The notes below the pieces were generated by a model. That model did not search any database. It saw nothing but the letters and a program-made list of their open reading frames with translations, and had not been told where the DNA came from. The translations under genes and the position numbers were made by a program. This document shows positions 1 to 7,565 of a stretch of 64,000 nucleotides of DNA, piece after piece. Positions within the stretch are counted from its first letter, which is position 1, and each line of letters begins with the position of its first letter. The stretch comes from Chlorokybus atmophyticus (taxonomy: Eukaryota; Plantae; Mesostigma and Chlorokybus algae): positions 653,412-717,411 of the forward strand of contig RHPI01002402.1 in NCBI GenBank assembly GCA_009103225.1, given 5' to 3'.

Positions 1-33
1 GGGGGGACATACTTCCCAAAGCGTCCCCTCAAC

Positions 34-3000
34 ATGCACGTGTGATGAGTCATCGTCAATACCAAGCTACATGAAGCAACACGCCATTACAGTCGTCTGC
101 ATCTCCAAGCCACACACTCAGGTTACAGACATTTTTGCGCTTGCAGGTGTCACTCAGCAAGTTGGACAATACTGCTCGGAGCATGCGTCGTCTTGCGCTA
201 TGCATGCGCACTGGACACTGGTCCACAGCCAAGTTCTGGTAAATGTCACGGCTACGAGAGCGCCATTTGCAGCACACAAAGCAAAACGATGGCAAGCTAA
301 TCACGTACCTGCTTCGCAGATGTACAGCGCAATGTGGCAGTCACCATTTCGCCAGCATTTCGCGGCATCATCCTGCTCGCTGGACTGCAGTCACAGCAAG
401 TGCCAGTCACGCTAAGTGACCCATCAGATGTTACGCTGACATTCCGCGGACAGCACAGCAGCAAGTTGCCTGGGAATGATCTTGTGAGTGCACGAGTACC
501 AGCAATTCAATATGCACTCATTGCACAAACGACAAAACCTCTTGTAGTGACTGACCCGGTAGGTACGGCTGGCAGGTGTTTGACCCACCGGAACTTGATT
601 TCCGCCGAGATGGTCCCAACACACTGTACTTCTCTGTCACAGCCACGGCCCCTGGGCAGTACACCGTCAGTTATGTGATCAGCGGTGCTGATGCTACAGA
701 CATAAAGTGGCCGCTCCAAGTAAGCTCAACTGTTGGGCTACCGTTCGATTGTCAAGCTGCTGATGCTTTGTCTTTCTCTCATAACGGAAGTCGTTGCCCA
801 GTGCATGTCTAACTACAGCATGATGCCAGGCTAGCATCATAAGAGTGAAGCCAAGGGAGATCTTTGCCATGAGGCCTCGCCTGGACGTTGCATACATCGG
901 GCGACCGTCAAGAGAAGTAAGAACCCTTCCTCACGAGCATATCACTCAACTACTTTGCACTAGTAGTTGTGCGATGACCTGCGGTTTGCTACAGTATGCG
1001 GTGTCCCTTTCCAAGCCCAGCAATGTGATGCTGGTTCCCCAAGCTGCTGGGGTTAGCTTCATACCAGAGAGCCTAGTCTTTCAGCGGAGTCTTCCACAAA
1101 CTGCCAGCTTCCAGCTGGTGGCTTCTGAGGATGCGGTAAGCTAGTTGACTCTGGCAGCATGCCAACAGCTGGATTGGCATGTAAGTTACAATGCTGCATT
1201 GGCAGGCTGAAGCGGGAAATGTAACAGTAACATACAAGGTGGAATGCTTTGACGACCAATGCGATGCTATGAACTTTGTGACACCGACACCACAACACCT
1301 CGTTGTGAAGGTAGCTAAGCTGTTCCTGCCACTGCCATGCCGCCATGCCACCTTGCTACTTGATACTGTGTCTACTTCGAACATTATTGATGCTGGTTGA
1401 GTTGTTGCAGAAGCGGATACAGTTGCACGTGCCTGCGCAGCTGCAAACTCGCATTGGCATGATCACACCGATTGCTGTCAGCTTGTCCTCTGCCTTTGAC
1501 GTGGTGGTAGGCATAAACGCCCCCAAGGTTAGTCCAATCACATGCGTTTGTCACTAGCGTTGTGTAGCTCACGCTCTCACAACTCATGCGCTTACACTGT
1601 GCTGGTGTTACCAGTTGCAGTTGAACAATACATTTCTGCGCTTTACACGAAGTGACGACATCTCTTATGTTGTCGGTGCTACTATGCATGATGATCACGC
1701 CAGTACCTGTCGCAACGAGACATCCGCATGCATATTTGAAGTGGAGTTTGTTGTGTCGGGCATCGACCGTGACTTGTTTGAGCAGCGCCGGTTCACCACC
1801 ATCCTGACCATTGCACCAGTGATATCTTTTGAGGTGCCTCCCCTGGACACCATCCTGTTCATAAACACCACTGCACCCGTCAGGGTTACACGCCCGACGC
1901 TACCAACACAACTGCATGAAGGCAATGAGTTGGAACAAGACGCGTATGTGAGAGTAAACATGACATGCAGCAGCAGCAACATCAACATTGAGCCTGCTGA
2001 TGTGCTATTCGGGCCAAACGACTATGAACATTTCTTCAATGTTACCGCTGCGGCTGTTGGTGAATACAGGTTGAAATTTGCACTGAGAGGTCCTGCTGCA
2101 CCTCAATATGACATAGTCGAGGAGCTGAAGGCTACGGCTCACCTGCCGCTTTTCAGTAATTCATTTGACTTTGAAGAGCTTGGAGTCGGCGGTCTTGATG
2201 AAGAGCTTAGGTCCATTGCTCGCAGAGCGTTTCTGAGTCACGTGCTGCCTGCCTCTGTTGTGGAAAACATTGGCATTACGCATGTACGCGGCATACTGCT
2301 ATACGGCCCACCTGGCTGTGGTGAGACAACCGGGTCATCAGCACATACCTTAATTGGAACGTTTGTCGGTGTAGATTTTGAGGCGCTGTATTCTGTCAGT
2401 CATTTCAATGATATTTGCACATTGTTATATCACTGCAGGAAAGACAACCATGGCGCGCCAAATAGGCAAGATGCTCAACACTCACCCTGCAAAGATCATC
2501 AATGGGCCGGAGATCATGAGCAAGTACTTGGGAGAGTCTGAGACAAAAATGCGAGAGCTGTTTGCTGAGGCGGAAGCTGATGAAAAGGCTGGGTCAGCTG
2601 GCAGTGGCAAGGTGCACTTAATTATCTTTGATGAGATCGACTCTTTGATGAAGCCACGCGGGCGCGGAAGGGGCGAAGCAGCTGATCAAGTGTATGACGG
2701 TGTCGCCAACACGCTGCTGTCTAAGATGGACGGCATGCAGAAGGTGTGGTAATGTTGTGTTCGTCAGGGATGTGCGTGCTTGAACACAATGTTAGAGTAA
2801 GCATCAACAAATAGTAGATAGGCATTGGTGTATCGGAACATTCATTCAGGAGTAACCTTTGACAATGCCAACAGCTGAACAACATTCTGGTGATTGGGAC
2901 CACAAACCGCAAGGAGCTGTTAGACTCTGCTCTTCTGCGTCCAGGGCGCTTTGACGTCCAGGTACGAGTTATCATCAACCTTCGTACATATGTGCAGACA

Positions 3001-4484
3001 TCACGTGCTGCAGCTGTCTTGCACGTGTGATGCTCGCAACGCCCAAATCAACTGAATTCAATATGCGGTACACTGCAGGTCAAGGTGGCTCTCCCTGACT
3101 TCAGAGGACGACTGCAAATTCTCCGCATACATACACGTCAAATGTTGAGGCATGGACACCTTGCAGCCGAAGTGGTATGCAGCAGCAGCAGCTATGGCAG
3201 CATTTACAAGAATTGCATGTCTCATTGTGAATCATTGGCAAACAGGATTTGGATGTGCTAGCAAACAAAACCGAAAGCTACACGGGCGCTGAGCTCGAGT
3301 CGCTTGTGAAAGGCGCAACATCATATGCAGTGAAGCACGTGTTGGAGAACGCATCTATTGGAGCAATGAGCAAGACCATAGAGGTATGGGAGTGATGGTT
3401 GCAGGGCAACCAACTGCCCTGTGACCGATGTGTGTATCATTGATACAGGTTGCTATGGATGACTTCCTGCAAGCTCTTGAAGAGATAGAGCCCGCCAATC
3501 GCAATCTCTCTGACCAGCTGTCAGCGCTGCTGCACAGCGGCATAGTTCATTATGGTCAGCACTTCAGTGAACTCGTAGCAACCCTGCAACGCATGGTAAC
3601 TCGAGCACAGGGCACTTGTCAAGATGCAACTTGGCCTCGCACAGCGTTTTCTCTTTTGTTGTACGGTCAACCTGGCAGCGGCAAATCCGCGTTAGCCGCG
3701 TACTTGACTCAAGAGTCTCAATGGGACTTTATCAAGGTCATCTCTGCAGAAGACCTGCTCGAGAGTACGGGTGATGCGCGCACAGATATGCTACAAGAGG
3801 CTTTTGCTGACGCATACAAAGGGAAAAAGAGTTTCCTGCTTCTTGACGACCTTGATGGGATGATCGAGCACGTGCACAACTCTGGTGCGTTGAGTTCCGC
3901 TTGAGTGGACCTCCTCACGACTGTACTGATGTGCTACATTCAATGTTGACTTCACGTGCATGATCACCTTACTCATCTGACCGCTACGTATACTGTGTCA
4001 GTTGTTGATCGCCTAATGTCTAGCAGGTGGTTCTACCGCTTGGAACAACGTGATGCTGAACACGCTGCGGCTGCTGTTGAAGCGGCAGCCGCCATCAGGT
4101 TGCCGTTTGTTGATTGTGGGAACAGCCTCGGCAGCCGTTCATATGCACCTAGCACAACTGTCAGAAGCTTTCGATGCATCAGTGGAAGTCCCTCAAATCG
4201 ACCAAAGAGATGACGTACGCACTGTACTGCATTCCACACACGCCTTCACCTCTCCACAAGAGCTTGACAAGAGCTTGGATCACATCGATCGTGGTATCAG
4301 CATAAAGATGCTGTTAACCGCTGTGGAGCTTTCGCGCAGCGCAAAGAATGCCTCTGCAACGGCGACTGACTTTAGGGAGCAACTGAAACACGTGGGGTAC
4401 TATCATCGCACGGGGCTGGCACCTGTTACACACGGCCCAGGCGGAAATGCCACTTATCAATACAATCCTGGCCATTGGTGGTGA
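34..4484 (+). CDS. NSF/Sec18-like AAA+ ATPase (D1-D2) with N-terminal signal-peptide-like segment and Ig-like repeats; about 15 exons
   Basis: Spliced D1: [23 protein letters not shown]...[11 protein letters not shown]|[12 protein letters not shown]...[14 protein letters not shown]...IIFDEID...[30 protein letters not shown]2: [16 protein letters not shown]...LLLDDLD...[20 protein letters not shown]. These follow the NSF consensus. Phase-compatible exons include 147-238, 341-483, 576-719, 830-916 and 1615-2321. The start exon 34-41 is tentative. Confidence 0.85.
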
Positions 4485-5640
4485 GATCTGCAGAATTTGT
4501 CTAGGCAGTGTACCTGTAGCCAATTATTGCACCATTGATTTAGTTTGATAACATTGCTCGCAGTTGAGTTAGCGCTTTACATTAGGCAGGCTACTTACAG
4601 TAGCCATTCTGCTGTTCAATGCCTTTGTTGCTGTTGCAAGGCTTCATGCTCAGTCATGATACTGGGTGCTGGAAACACTAGGTGCTGACAATGTGTCGTA
4701 CTCGCCATGGACATCTTCAGCCACTGATTCCCGGTACTTCCTTCACAATAATTGCAAAAACCCTGGCCCACAATCGACCTCCTCAATGTCTTGTAATCAG
4801 GGTTGCATTGTACGATGATGCTGGACACTTGATGCAGTCTGGTGTACGCACTAGCATGTACTCAGGACTGGTAATTTCTGTGTTTGCCATGGTGGTGATT
4901 TTGTGTGCTAATGGCCTGTTACTGTTGGGTACGTTGGAGGGTAAGGGCATGGCTGTACTGTTACTGGCTGCCCAGAGAACCAACTGCGAGTTAATAGAGC
5001 AATATGAGATCATGAACAGTTCGCACAGCACAAGCAAGCAGACTTACGCAACCCACACACACCAGATTAAGTTGGCCCAATGTGTGGTAGTGTACAGAAA
5101 ATGCAAGTGATGTATGCCAGGTGCATAGAATGTGGCATGCAATGGCGCATGCATTCTGCGCGCAAGGAGTGCAGCTAGCACACAGCATGCAAGCAAGTCA
5201 TGAACTACTGTATGTCAACTACCACTACCATTAACATTAACAACCCCCTTTGACATGCAAAGCAGCGTGTGGATGGCAATGGCATGCATAGGCAGTACTG
5301 AGTAACTGACTGACTCACATACCCTGCATGCATATCACAATGGCACCATCATGCACAGCCACATATATCCTGTGCATCATGCACATACCATAAAGGTGGG
5401 CACAAACCTTCGGACCATGCAATGCATGTACTTGGTAACATAAGACAGACACCGGCACGAGGCGGAGAGCATGGCCTTGGTGCAGCAGCACAGCGGCGGG
5501 TGTGCTGCCTTGCGCACATGCCAGTGGCTCCAAACCAGAGCTGTGCTGCTGGCCCGCAAAGTGCCCAACGATTGCCACGAACGACTACATTACGCAAACC
5601 AATAGCAGACTTGTCAAGTTCCAAGAGCAGCATAGCAAGT

Positions 5641-7565
<1,925 letters not shown>

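Follow-up and report, generated by a model that had tools for sequence, protein, structure and literature searches.

NSF/Sec18, which among the type II AAA proteins belongs to the NSF branch of the Cdc48 family, carries two ATPase modules in tandem (D1-D2) and is regarded as a motor of the cytosol that is present in a single copy and serves one purpose, the recycling of SNAREs. The protein described here is encoded by a 64,000-nucleotide stretch of the genome of Chlorokybus atmophyticus (the window); it has the same D1-D2 tandem and shares with NSF the NEM-type Cys, the pore loop K-Y-[VL]-G, the RPGR motif, and an NSF-like D2. However, it lacks the NSF N-domain, in place of which stand an N-terminal signal and four beta-sandwich repeats, and in a tree with NSF fragments its D1 occupies a long branch outside the canonical cluster. 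It probably lies on the opposite side of the membrane from the SNAREs and SNAP. To our knowledge, no characterised member of the NSF/Cdc48 family works outside the cytosol, the nucleus, and compartments derived from the cytosol, and we count this against a lumenal location.

Three other kinds of AAA+ proteins invite comparison. Torsins are described in a review as the only AAA+ proteins that reside in the NE/ER network (PMC7175109). Like the Chlorokybus protein they are AAA+ proteins that begin with a signal or hydrophobic segment, and the ER lumen, where torsins are located, is also the predicted location of the Chlorokybus protein; the two are nonetheless unrelated within AAA+, and no torsin chain occurs among the best 60 matches of each of the PDB searches with the D1, D2, and linker exons. 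Torsins form a single ring and have no Arg finger of their own, whereas the Chlorokybus protein has two NSF-type rings and has kept RPGR. The symbiont-specific Cdc48 (SELMA) of algae with complex plastids is a Cdc48-family double ring that gained a signal peptide (PMC5070193). It differs from the Chlorokybus protein in that it belongs to the Cdc48 branch and retains its N-domain. Its destination, the periplastidial compartment, is a reduced cytosol and not a lumen, and the plastid of Chlorokybus is primary. Finally, Msp1/ATAD1 and other N-anchored AAA proteins share with the Chlorokybus protein a hydrophobic N-terminus followed by an AAA module; they are single rings with a true span of ~20 residues, a proven cytosolic orientation, and no beta-sandwich repeats. 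We found no description of this NSF derivative in the literature.

The gene has 14 exons at positions 147-4484 on the + strand (as are all features given below), all of which are joined in a single spliced transcript contig. The positions of the introns were first predicted by eye and then compared with this contig (3,467 nt, run X1); all 13 introns have GT..AG sites, and all are spliced out. Because the 13 introns are skipped in the same contig, the repeats and the ATPase are encoded by one mRNA and belong, as the sequence-only reading had held, to one gene rather than two; this gene is expressed. A skeptic could argue that the fusion is an artefact arising from two adjacent genes or from an unused reading frame, and could point out that the transcript support is one assembled contig and that an orthologue (L008, described below) has a stop at the junction of repeats and ATPase. 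For the window, this explanation is refuted by 13 exact GT..AG joints in one contig; also, the repeats of the orthologues L003 and L004 enter D1 without a stop, and four taxa are colinear. We regard an artefact as barely credible.

The start of the gene had been placed at position 34, which proved wrong: the window opens within intron 1, the 3′ part of which (1..146) ends with ttgcag, and the loose end of the contig falls before 147. The 5′ leader exon is upstream of the window and has ~284 nt (the length of the contig minus the placed exons); it ends ...TAGGATAGAAGCACACCCAACAT, and its AT together with G147 forms a start codon, AT|G, that is split by intron 1. An in-frame TAG is located seven codons 5′ of the split start codon. 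Because of the split AT|G and the upstream TAG, the hydrophobic exon is the true N-terminus. This exon (147..238; joint 238/320 in the contig) is the second of the mRNA and the first with coding sequence; the transcript contig, used as an RNA check of the first exons, reads it right after the initiator Met and in the frame that had been claimed, although the exon has no ATG of its own. A start at one of the ATGs of the window was rejected, as the frames opened by ATG 34 and ATG 45 end at stops and ATG 71 belongs to a different frame. The 3′ UTR extends from 4485 to 4590, the reach of the contig pieces from runs X1 and X3. The encoded protein has ~1,025 residues, in which a signal-peptide-like start is followed by the four repeats and then by the NSF-type D1 and D2.

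The N-D1 linker, D1, and its lid are encoded by 2149..3383, that is, by the end of exon 1615-2320 and by exons 2439-2743, 2875-2961, 3079-3174, and 3246-3383, all placed by the transcript; Pfam identifies AAA and AAA_lid_3 in this part. The D1-D2 linker, D2, and the C-terminal tail with the stop follow in 3449..4484 (exons 3449-3884 and 4027-4484). In phmmer searches of the PDB, NSF/Sec18 is at the top among the solved AAA proteins for D1, D2, and the N-D1 linker (best 60 matches each): the E-values are 7.6e-27 for NSF/Sec18 vs 2.6e-19 for Cdc48 with D1, 1e-17 for NSF vs 5e-12 for VAT with D2, and 6.4e-16 for NSF/Sec18 vs 1e-6 with the linker. An NSF/Cdc48 N-domain (CDC48_N, CDC48_2, or any Pfam model) was not detected at E-values up to 1 in exons 148-2148, nor in the first 460 residues. 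All searches used individual exons as queries. Judged by these matches the NSF ancestry is clear, and the derivation from NSF without its SNAP-binding N-domain, which had been suggested from the letters of the sequence, is borne out. In a tree of 97 columns of D1, taken without any other AAA outgroup, the Chlorokybus protein and the sequence P0008 pair with 99% SH-aLRT support; the stem of this pair measures 1.03, and 66 canonical NSF fragments lie apart from it.

Direct reading of the exon translations locates every D1 motif that had been described as intact: Walker A (GPPGCGKT; 2305-2320 + 2439-2446), the pore loop KYLG (2522-2533), the DE of Walker B (in IIFDEID; 2630-2635), the sensor-1 N (in TTN; 2905-2907), and the Arg fingers (in LLRPGRFD; 2938-2940 and 2947-2949). 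D2 has a Walker A (GQPGSGKS; 3665-3688) and a Walker B with DD (in LLLDDLD; 3845-3850). The Walker A of D1 carries the NEM-type Cys (GPPGCGKT); in an oxidising lumen this Cys would be a free thiol, which we count against a lumenal location.

The four repeats precede the ATPase. Repeat 1 (320..720) is encoded by exons 320-483 and 576-720, repeat 2 (830..1310) by exons 830-916, 995-1135, and 1206-1310, and repeat 3 (1411..1824) by exon 1411-1527 and the start of exon 1615-2320, in which repeat 4 (1825..2148) follows; the joints between these exons are those of the transcript. The repeats resemble one another weakly (best pair within the protein, E 3e-5). A search of the full library of 1.84 billion representatives with HMMER found one relative of the repeat part, P0005/P0006; the Chlorokybus protein was absent from its own result, so the library does not contain this gene. 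P0006 (JGI 3300011120, metagenomic) is 3,286 residues long; it opens with a classic signal peptide, contains 31 repeats, and closes with a hydrophobic tail that is GPI- or TM-like. Its repeats belong to the same family of ~100 residues (...P..L.F....F.V.A....Y.V.Y.[LI]SG.DA) as those of Chlorokybus; however, P0006 has no ATPase, the identity between the repeats is ~15-23%, and those of P0006 lack the conserved Cys pairs. With an HMM built from the 31 repeats, three Chlorokybus exons reach 42.9, 32.1, and 20.7 bits, of which the 32.1 bits fall on 576-720 (repeat 1) and the 20.7 bits on 995-1135 (repeat 2); in exon 1615-2320 its domain 1 is repeat 3 and its domain 2 (32.4 bits) is repeat 4. These scores are well above the top score of 8.6 bits in a control of 200 shuffles per exon, and across all six frames of the window the HMM matches this gene only. 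By this evidence the repeats are a real family, and the three repeat strings that had been called Ig-like are read in the exon translations. No Pfam family covers them: in a search with the translations of all 14 exons, the N-terminal exons drew no hit. In a PDB sequence search with exon 1615-2319, its NSF part alone was matched.

An AF2 model of repeat 4 is a beta-sandwich (pLDDT 83.6), in agreement with the Ig-like description. Foldseek relates this fold to HYDIN, MSP, FaeE, and the N-domain of cystinosin (E 1e-4, TM ~0.5), and VIA-align (Z up to 9.3) finds it common to transglutaminase, complement MG, and S-layer domains; a feature search of the ESM Atlas gave weak leads only (≤0.88: Calx-beta, LapA, Big_2, and a CTNS fragment). 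The matches include cytosolic domains (MSP, ASH/HYDIN, and the Calx-beta CBD) as well as lumenal or extracellular domains (the cystinosin N-domain, pilus chaperones, and complement MG), and the searches of three libraries for the fold assign the repeat to no single family or compartment. As modeled, the fold is generic and occurs on both sides of membranes, which we count against a lumenal location.

Three further taxa, known from metagenome contigs of unverified origin and probably green algae, keep the fusion of repeats and ATPase, so that it is known from four taxa in total, with a colinear architecture in all four; we count this small number, and the unverified origin of three of the four, against our reading. 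In L003, one uninterrupted ORF runs from the repeats into the start of D1. L003, L005, and L008 retain Walker A and B as well as the pore loop, sensor 1, and the Arg fingers. L005/L007, which has a divergent gene ~180 nt upstream, starts with MALHHRPRRFTR, followed by a hydrophobic stretch of ~19 residues (15 uncharged) and then by a linker of ~190 residues that is acidic and rich in Ser and Pro; type II Golgi proteins are built in this way. L008 starts with MRERCSRVLR-VALAFALASSL, is colinear over 478 residues, and scores 32.2 bits with the repeat HMM; it has an in-frame TGA precisely between the repeats and the ATPase, which may or may not be an assembly error and which we count against our reading. 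Selenocysteine at this TGA was rejected, the aligned Chlorokybus residue not being Cys. Thus the survey of orthologues added three taxa with the fusion, and both of the N-termini that are visible among them (L005 and L008) have a hydrophobic signal. A word search with exon 1615-2320 recovered four fragments, one of them a true orthologue (P0001), and one with the first exon of L005 matched nothing but itself. P0125/L009 was rejected as an orthologue despite 71% identity: it is a canonical NSF with an NSF-type N-domain, and therefore identity over short segments cannot separate the paralogue from canonical NSF.

The third base of the start codon and the predicted signal peptide occupy 147..210. 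The hydrophobic core of the Chlorokybus signal starts at residue 7 and has 11 residues with a mean Kyte-Doolittle value of 2.42; small residues at −3 and −1 (A-C-A before L23) predict cleavage after ACA, between 210 and 211. The uncharged cores have 11-17 residues in Chlorokybus, 15 in L005, and 13 in L008, all within the first 30 residues. The signal, its orientation, and its cleavage were judged by a rule-based check. The charge difference across the core, Δ(C−N), is −1 in Chlorokybus, −7 in L005, and −5 in L008; by this rule the charges around the core favor translocation of the C-terminal side. The Chlorokybus difference is small, and we count this against a lumenal location. Past the first exon, no 19-residue window exceeds a Kyte-Doolittle value of 1.78, and the best one falls in beta-strand sequence of repeat 3; no TM helix separates the repeats from the ATPase, and the C-terminus reads NPGHWW, with no KDEL/HDEL, both as had been noted.

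The same segment could instead be an uncleaved N-terminal anchor, with the repeats and both rings in the cytosol, on the ER or on the outer membrane of an organelle; the protein would then be a membrane-tethered, NSF-like remodeller for which the N-anchored AAA proteins of the Msp1/ATAD1 type are the model, and anchors of the P450 type have the same placement. This is the main alternative. The supply of ATP and the cytosolic location of every known relative agree with it, as does the occurrence of the repeat fold in cytosolic trafficking proteins (MSP/VAP, ASH, and TRAPPII), and the sole charge near the Chlorokybus core is the Arg after it, which gives the difference of −1. However, the cores of Chlorokybus and L008 (11-13 uncharged residues) are short for a membrane span, the flanks in L005 and L008 (+5 and +4 before the core, −2 and −1 after it) predict the opposite orientation, and the sole sequence relative of the repeats has a signal peptide. 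A targeting signal for mitochondria or plastids, with the protein at work in a subcompartment such as the intermembrane space or the thylakoid lumen, would be in keeping with the abundance of Arg, Ala, Leu, and Ser in the N-termini of L008 and L005 and with the presence of AAA proteins of this layout in mitochondria; but the Chlorokybus core begins at residue 7 with no basic presequence ahead of it, and the cores are unbroken hydrophobic runs and not amphipathic helices.

Sequons and Cys pairs bear on both alternatives. All six N-x-T sequons that had been listed are read in the exon translations, NVT in repeat 2 (1218-1226, exon 1206-1310) and the others in exon 1615-2319 (1615-2320 with its last base), namely NNT and NET in repeat 3 and NTT (1864-1872), NMT, and NVT in repeat 4. 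By shuffling, 1.2 are expected in the repeat region (P ~0.0002); the same test found no enrichment of N-x-T in the ATPase part, which has five sequons. The NTT/NRT sequon of repeat 4 is strictly conserved across three taxa. In L008, 478 residues contain a single sequon, and on this count the enrichment is not general among the orthologues; the few sequons of L008 and the ATPase part with its lack of enrichment speak for a cytosolic location, whereas neither the enrichment nor the conserved sequon would serve a purpose in an organelle. The two close Cys pairs reported earlier are also present: pair 1 in repeat 2 (codons 1245-1247 and 1260-1262; both Cys invariant in three taxa) and pair 2 in repeat 3 (codons 1708-1710 and 1729-1731; aligned in the orthologues). 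Both are conserved in all taxa, with spacings of x4/x6/x12 and x6/x5/x4, and the mature N-region of L008 has no other cysteines. Conservation with variable spacing fits disulfide loops and not metal sites, and it suggests that the two pairs form disulfides; this is hard to explain in the cytosol, although disulfides form in the intermembrane space and the thylakoid lumen as well. On balance we consider an anchored cytosolic protein unlikely, if worth keeping in mind, and an organellar one quite improbable.

Our preferred reading is that the protein is an active, NSF-derived hexamer, predicted to lie in the lumen of the ER or Golgi; we give this a probability of roughly 60%. An N-terminal ER signal and four repeats stand where NSF has the domain that binds SNAP and SNAREs. 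The signal would direct the entire chain into the ER, with no further membrane helix, and the protein, either soluble or tethered in type II fashion, would remain as a hexamer in the lumen of the ER/Golgi. Six repeat arms may then grip lumenal clients, which may be large, beta-rich repeat glycoproteins bound for the surface, and the KYLG pore loop of D1 would pull on these clients with lumenal ATP, resulting in unfolding or in the disassembly of complexes. As with the two rings of NSF, the D1 ring would be catalytic and the D2 ring would serve assembly.

The sequence-only reading had placed the protein in the secretory pathway or the cell wall. The former is favored by the signal, the homology to P0006, the orthologues, and the Cys pairs; the cell wall is the weaker half, because the conservation of the ATPase motifs points to a compartment in which ATP is present. 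At the cell surface or wall ATP is scarce, and a protein secreted there would have mainly a structural or binding role, with its ATPase rings as an assembly hub. Such a protein would account for a signal that is not accompanied by KDEL/HDEL and for repeats like those of P0006, with its signal peptide and hydrophobic tail. The catalytic motifs are, however, kept across Chlorokybus, L003, L005, and L008, which implies selection for ATP turnover, and the type-II anchor and stem of L005 are typical of Golgi residents; we therefore consider secretion to the surface improbable.

If the lumenal reading is true, a strong double-ring unfoldase has been moved across a membrane, as a conserved NSF derivative with a signal and surface-type repeats. 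It would raise the questions of which lumenal clients in algae need ATP-driven unfolding or disassembly, where the lumenal ATP comes from, and how a hexamer with a free thiol in Walker A fares under oxidising conditions. Expression of the gene and the available orthologues make assays of localisation, glycosylation, and ATPase activity feasible now. For research on AAA+ proteins, the gene offers a natural swap of the N-domain on an NSF chassis. At somewhat less than even odds, we propose that it represents an old NSF paralogue inside the secretory pathway, kept by green algae of both the chlorophyte and the streptophyte lineages; among the NSF/Cdc48 double rings it would be the first with a lumenal location and, after the torsins, the second lumenal kind of AAA+ protein, and it may provide ATP-driven unfolding or disassembly of secretory cargo, for example giant beta-repeat surface glycoproteins, before export.

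Direct reading of positions 1–5400 of the window and translation of the open stretches place the NSF-like gene on the plus strand, with short GT..AG introns separating 14 coding exons (147–238, 320–483, 576–720, 830–916, 995–1135, 1206–1310, 1411–1527, 1615–2320, 2439–2743, 2875–2961, 3079–3174, 3246–3383, 3449–3884, and 4027–4484). All 13 introns are absent, at exactly the sites that we read, from a single 3,467-nt contig of X1, a public transcript run from the same organism; these exact GT..AG skips mark the contig as a product of splicing. The repeats and the ATPase are therefore encoded on one mRNA, in line with the single gene, rather than two, that the sequence-only reading had supposed. 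For the window, an artefact of the gene model can be ruled out. The 3′ end of the gene is also covered by a second study, X3. At 1611–1620 there are two acceptors in tandem, ccag|ttgcag|, with an in-frame spacing of six bases; the X1 contig takes the first, so that the exon starts at 1615. A 276-residue ORF on the minus strand (5641–6471), convergent with the NSF-like gene and ~1.1 kb past its stop, resembles, as judged by eye, part of ribosomal protein uL3.

The X1 contig also reaches ~284 nt further 5′ than position 147; this part is not found in the window and represents a 5′ leader encoded upstream of it. This sequence ends ...TAG GAT AGA AGC ACA CCC AAC AT, which with G147 completes an ATG, and the TAG is in frame seven codons 5′ of that split start. 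The initiator codon is interrupted by the first intron (AT|G at 147), and the first base of the window falls within intron 1. The split ATG and the upstream in-frame TAG establish the hydrophobic exon as the real N-terminus; the frame proposed for it is the one used, although this could not be seen from the window alone.

In the ATPase exons, Pfam matched AAA and AAA_lid_3. Against all solved structures, NSF/Sec18 was the top match, above Cdc48/VAT, for D1 (E = 7.6e-27), D2 (E = 1e-17), and the 57 residues ahead of Walker A (E = 6.4e-16). The NSF similarity begins at about residue 179 of the translation of exon 1615–2319, aligned to NSF residue 211, just past the end of the NSF N-domain. The D1 motifs described earlier as intact are all read in the translation (Walker A, GPPGCGKT; pore loop, KYLG; Walker B, IIFDEID; sensor 1, TTN; and the Arg fingers, LLRPGRFD), and both Walker motifs are present in D2. 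In a tree built on D1 fragments, the window protein and its metagenomic orthologue P0008 join as a pair (99% SH-aLRT) whose long stem separates them from 66 canonical NSF fragments; this placement argues that they are a separate NSF subfamily and not a recent copy.

The proposal that repeats replace the SNAP-binding N-domain held: no Pfam model matches the N-terminal 460 residues, in which four repeats of ~100–110 residues each are recognized by eye and by profile. In a full HMMER search of 1.84 billion representatives, the only protein found with the last 178 residues of this region was P0005 (E = 2.9e-4, seven stretches), a fragment of the 3,286-residue metagenomic protein P0006, which contains 31 repeats. 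Against a profile of these 31 repeats, three exons of the gene reach 42.9, 32.1, and 20.7 bits (200 shuffles of each exon gave ≤8.6 bits); in a six-frame scan of the whole window, the profile has no match elsewhere. The first residues of P0006 are a textbook signal peptide, MARSTVTLLVCLCLLVSVTNA-Q, and its last ones form a hydrophobic tail, features seen in secreted or surface proteins. It is encoded by one unbroken ORF on a 9.9-kb JGI contig, and its repeat family has no Pfam model. Aided by the P0006 alignment, AlphaFold modeled repeat 4 as a confident β-sandwich (pLDDT 83.6); its structural neighbors include the cystinosin lumenal domain, pilus chaperones, complement MG and S-layer domains as well as MSP, ASH/HYDIN, and Calx-β. 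These Ig-like neighbors occur on both sides of membranes, so the fold is uninformative about compartment.

Word searches and one metagenome scan located orthologous loci in three further (inferred) taxa. The first is represented by five contigs (L001 and L004–L007; GC 57–67%) whose exons are 93–97% identical; in L004, repeat 4 continues into D1 within one ORF. The second (L003; GC 64%) encodes part of repeat 3, repeat 4, and the start of D1 in one unbroken ORF. The third (L008; GC 59%), a compact, gene-dense contig, encodes a 478-residue N-terminal ORF colinear with the Chlorokybus N-region, with NSF-type D1 and D2 downstream. We analyzed these as two separate pieces, divided by an in-frame TGA (L008:9896–9898) exactly where the last repeat gives way to the NSF-type linker; the TGA is flanked on both sides by conserved in-frame coding sequence, has no GT..AG intron around it, and might reflect an error of assembly, read-through, or a broken or split gene. 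A transposon-like intron with terminal inverted repeats (CAGGGGCTTACACTCGT ... ACGAGTGTAAGCCCCTG) occurs at least 14 times in the orthologous gene of L005 (1100–8700). Several of these copies are missing from L001 despite the 93–97% exon identity, so intron presence differs between close relatives. Introner elements have been reported in Micromonas, and the L005 introns resemble these. Another observation is a plant-type telomere repeat, (CCCTAAA)n, within an intron of the orthologue (L005:5605–5709).

A hydrophobic signal stands at the extreme start of all three visible N-termini. That of Chlorokybus is built like a eukaryotic signal peptide, as judged from its ~22 residues, 11-residue core (mean hydropathy 2.42), and Ala at both −3 and −1. 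L008 begins MRERCSRVLR-VALAFALASSL. The L005/L007 protein, whose first exon has its ATG ~180 nt from a divergent neighboring gene, starts MALHHRPRRFTR, followed by a ~19-residue hydrophobic stretch (15 uncharged), KR, and ~190 acidic and Ser/Pro-rich residues ahead of the repeats; type II Golgi membrane proteins are laid out in this way. The charge differences across the cores (−1, −7, and −5) favor an N-end left in the cytosol and translocation of the C-side. Targeting to an organelle is very improbable. Two cysteine pairs align in every taxon with variable spacing (x4, x6, and x12 in the first; x6, x5, and x4 in the second) and no other cysteines occur in the mature L008 N-region; loops closed by disulfides show this pattern. 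The six N-x-T sequons noted in Chlorokybus are present and exceed the 1.2 expected (P ~0.0002); one is invariant in three taxa, and L008 has one only.

As had been claimed, the exon translations contain no membrane helix between the repeats and the ATPase, nor anywhere after the first exon of the Chlorokybus protein. Because there is no later helix, the whole chain would enter the ER. The main rival, an uncleaved anchor with the whole protein facing the cytosol, agrees with the supply of ATP and with the habits of the family, but it is a poor match to the short hydrophobic cores, the charge pattern, and the cysteine pairs, and we consider it unlikely. The sequence-only reading had allowed for either the secretory pathway or the cell wall; the former stands as a prediction, and the latter, that is, secretion to the wall without use of ATP, is improbable, since conservation of the ATPase motifs points to a compartment that contains ATP, such as the ER or Golgi lumen. 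The simplest account, to which we give a probability of roughly 0.6, places the whole chain in the ER or Golgi lumen, where it would assemble as an NSF-style hexamer whose repeat arms would hold lumenal clients.

According to a Cdc48-family survey (PMC5070193), NSF is mostly a singleton, and term searches of that survey returned no such signal-bearing, repeat-fused variant; a review states that no AAA+ proteins other than torsins reside in the NE/ER network (PMC7175109). Full-text literature searches returned no published description of such a protein; subscription journals lie largely outside their coverage, so novelty is unproven. On a further JGI contig (9,437 bp), the 410-residue protein P0004 has an NSF-like D1 start (GGLDNQLDAIARRV...GPPGCGKT) preceded by a different N-region of ~330 residues whose N-terminus, MKNQLHMMIFFQFMGTIPMIHCF, is hydrophobic. 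Other lineages, too, may have motors of the NSF type that begin with a signal-like stretch.
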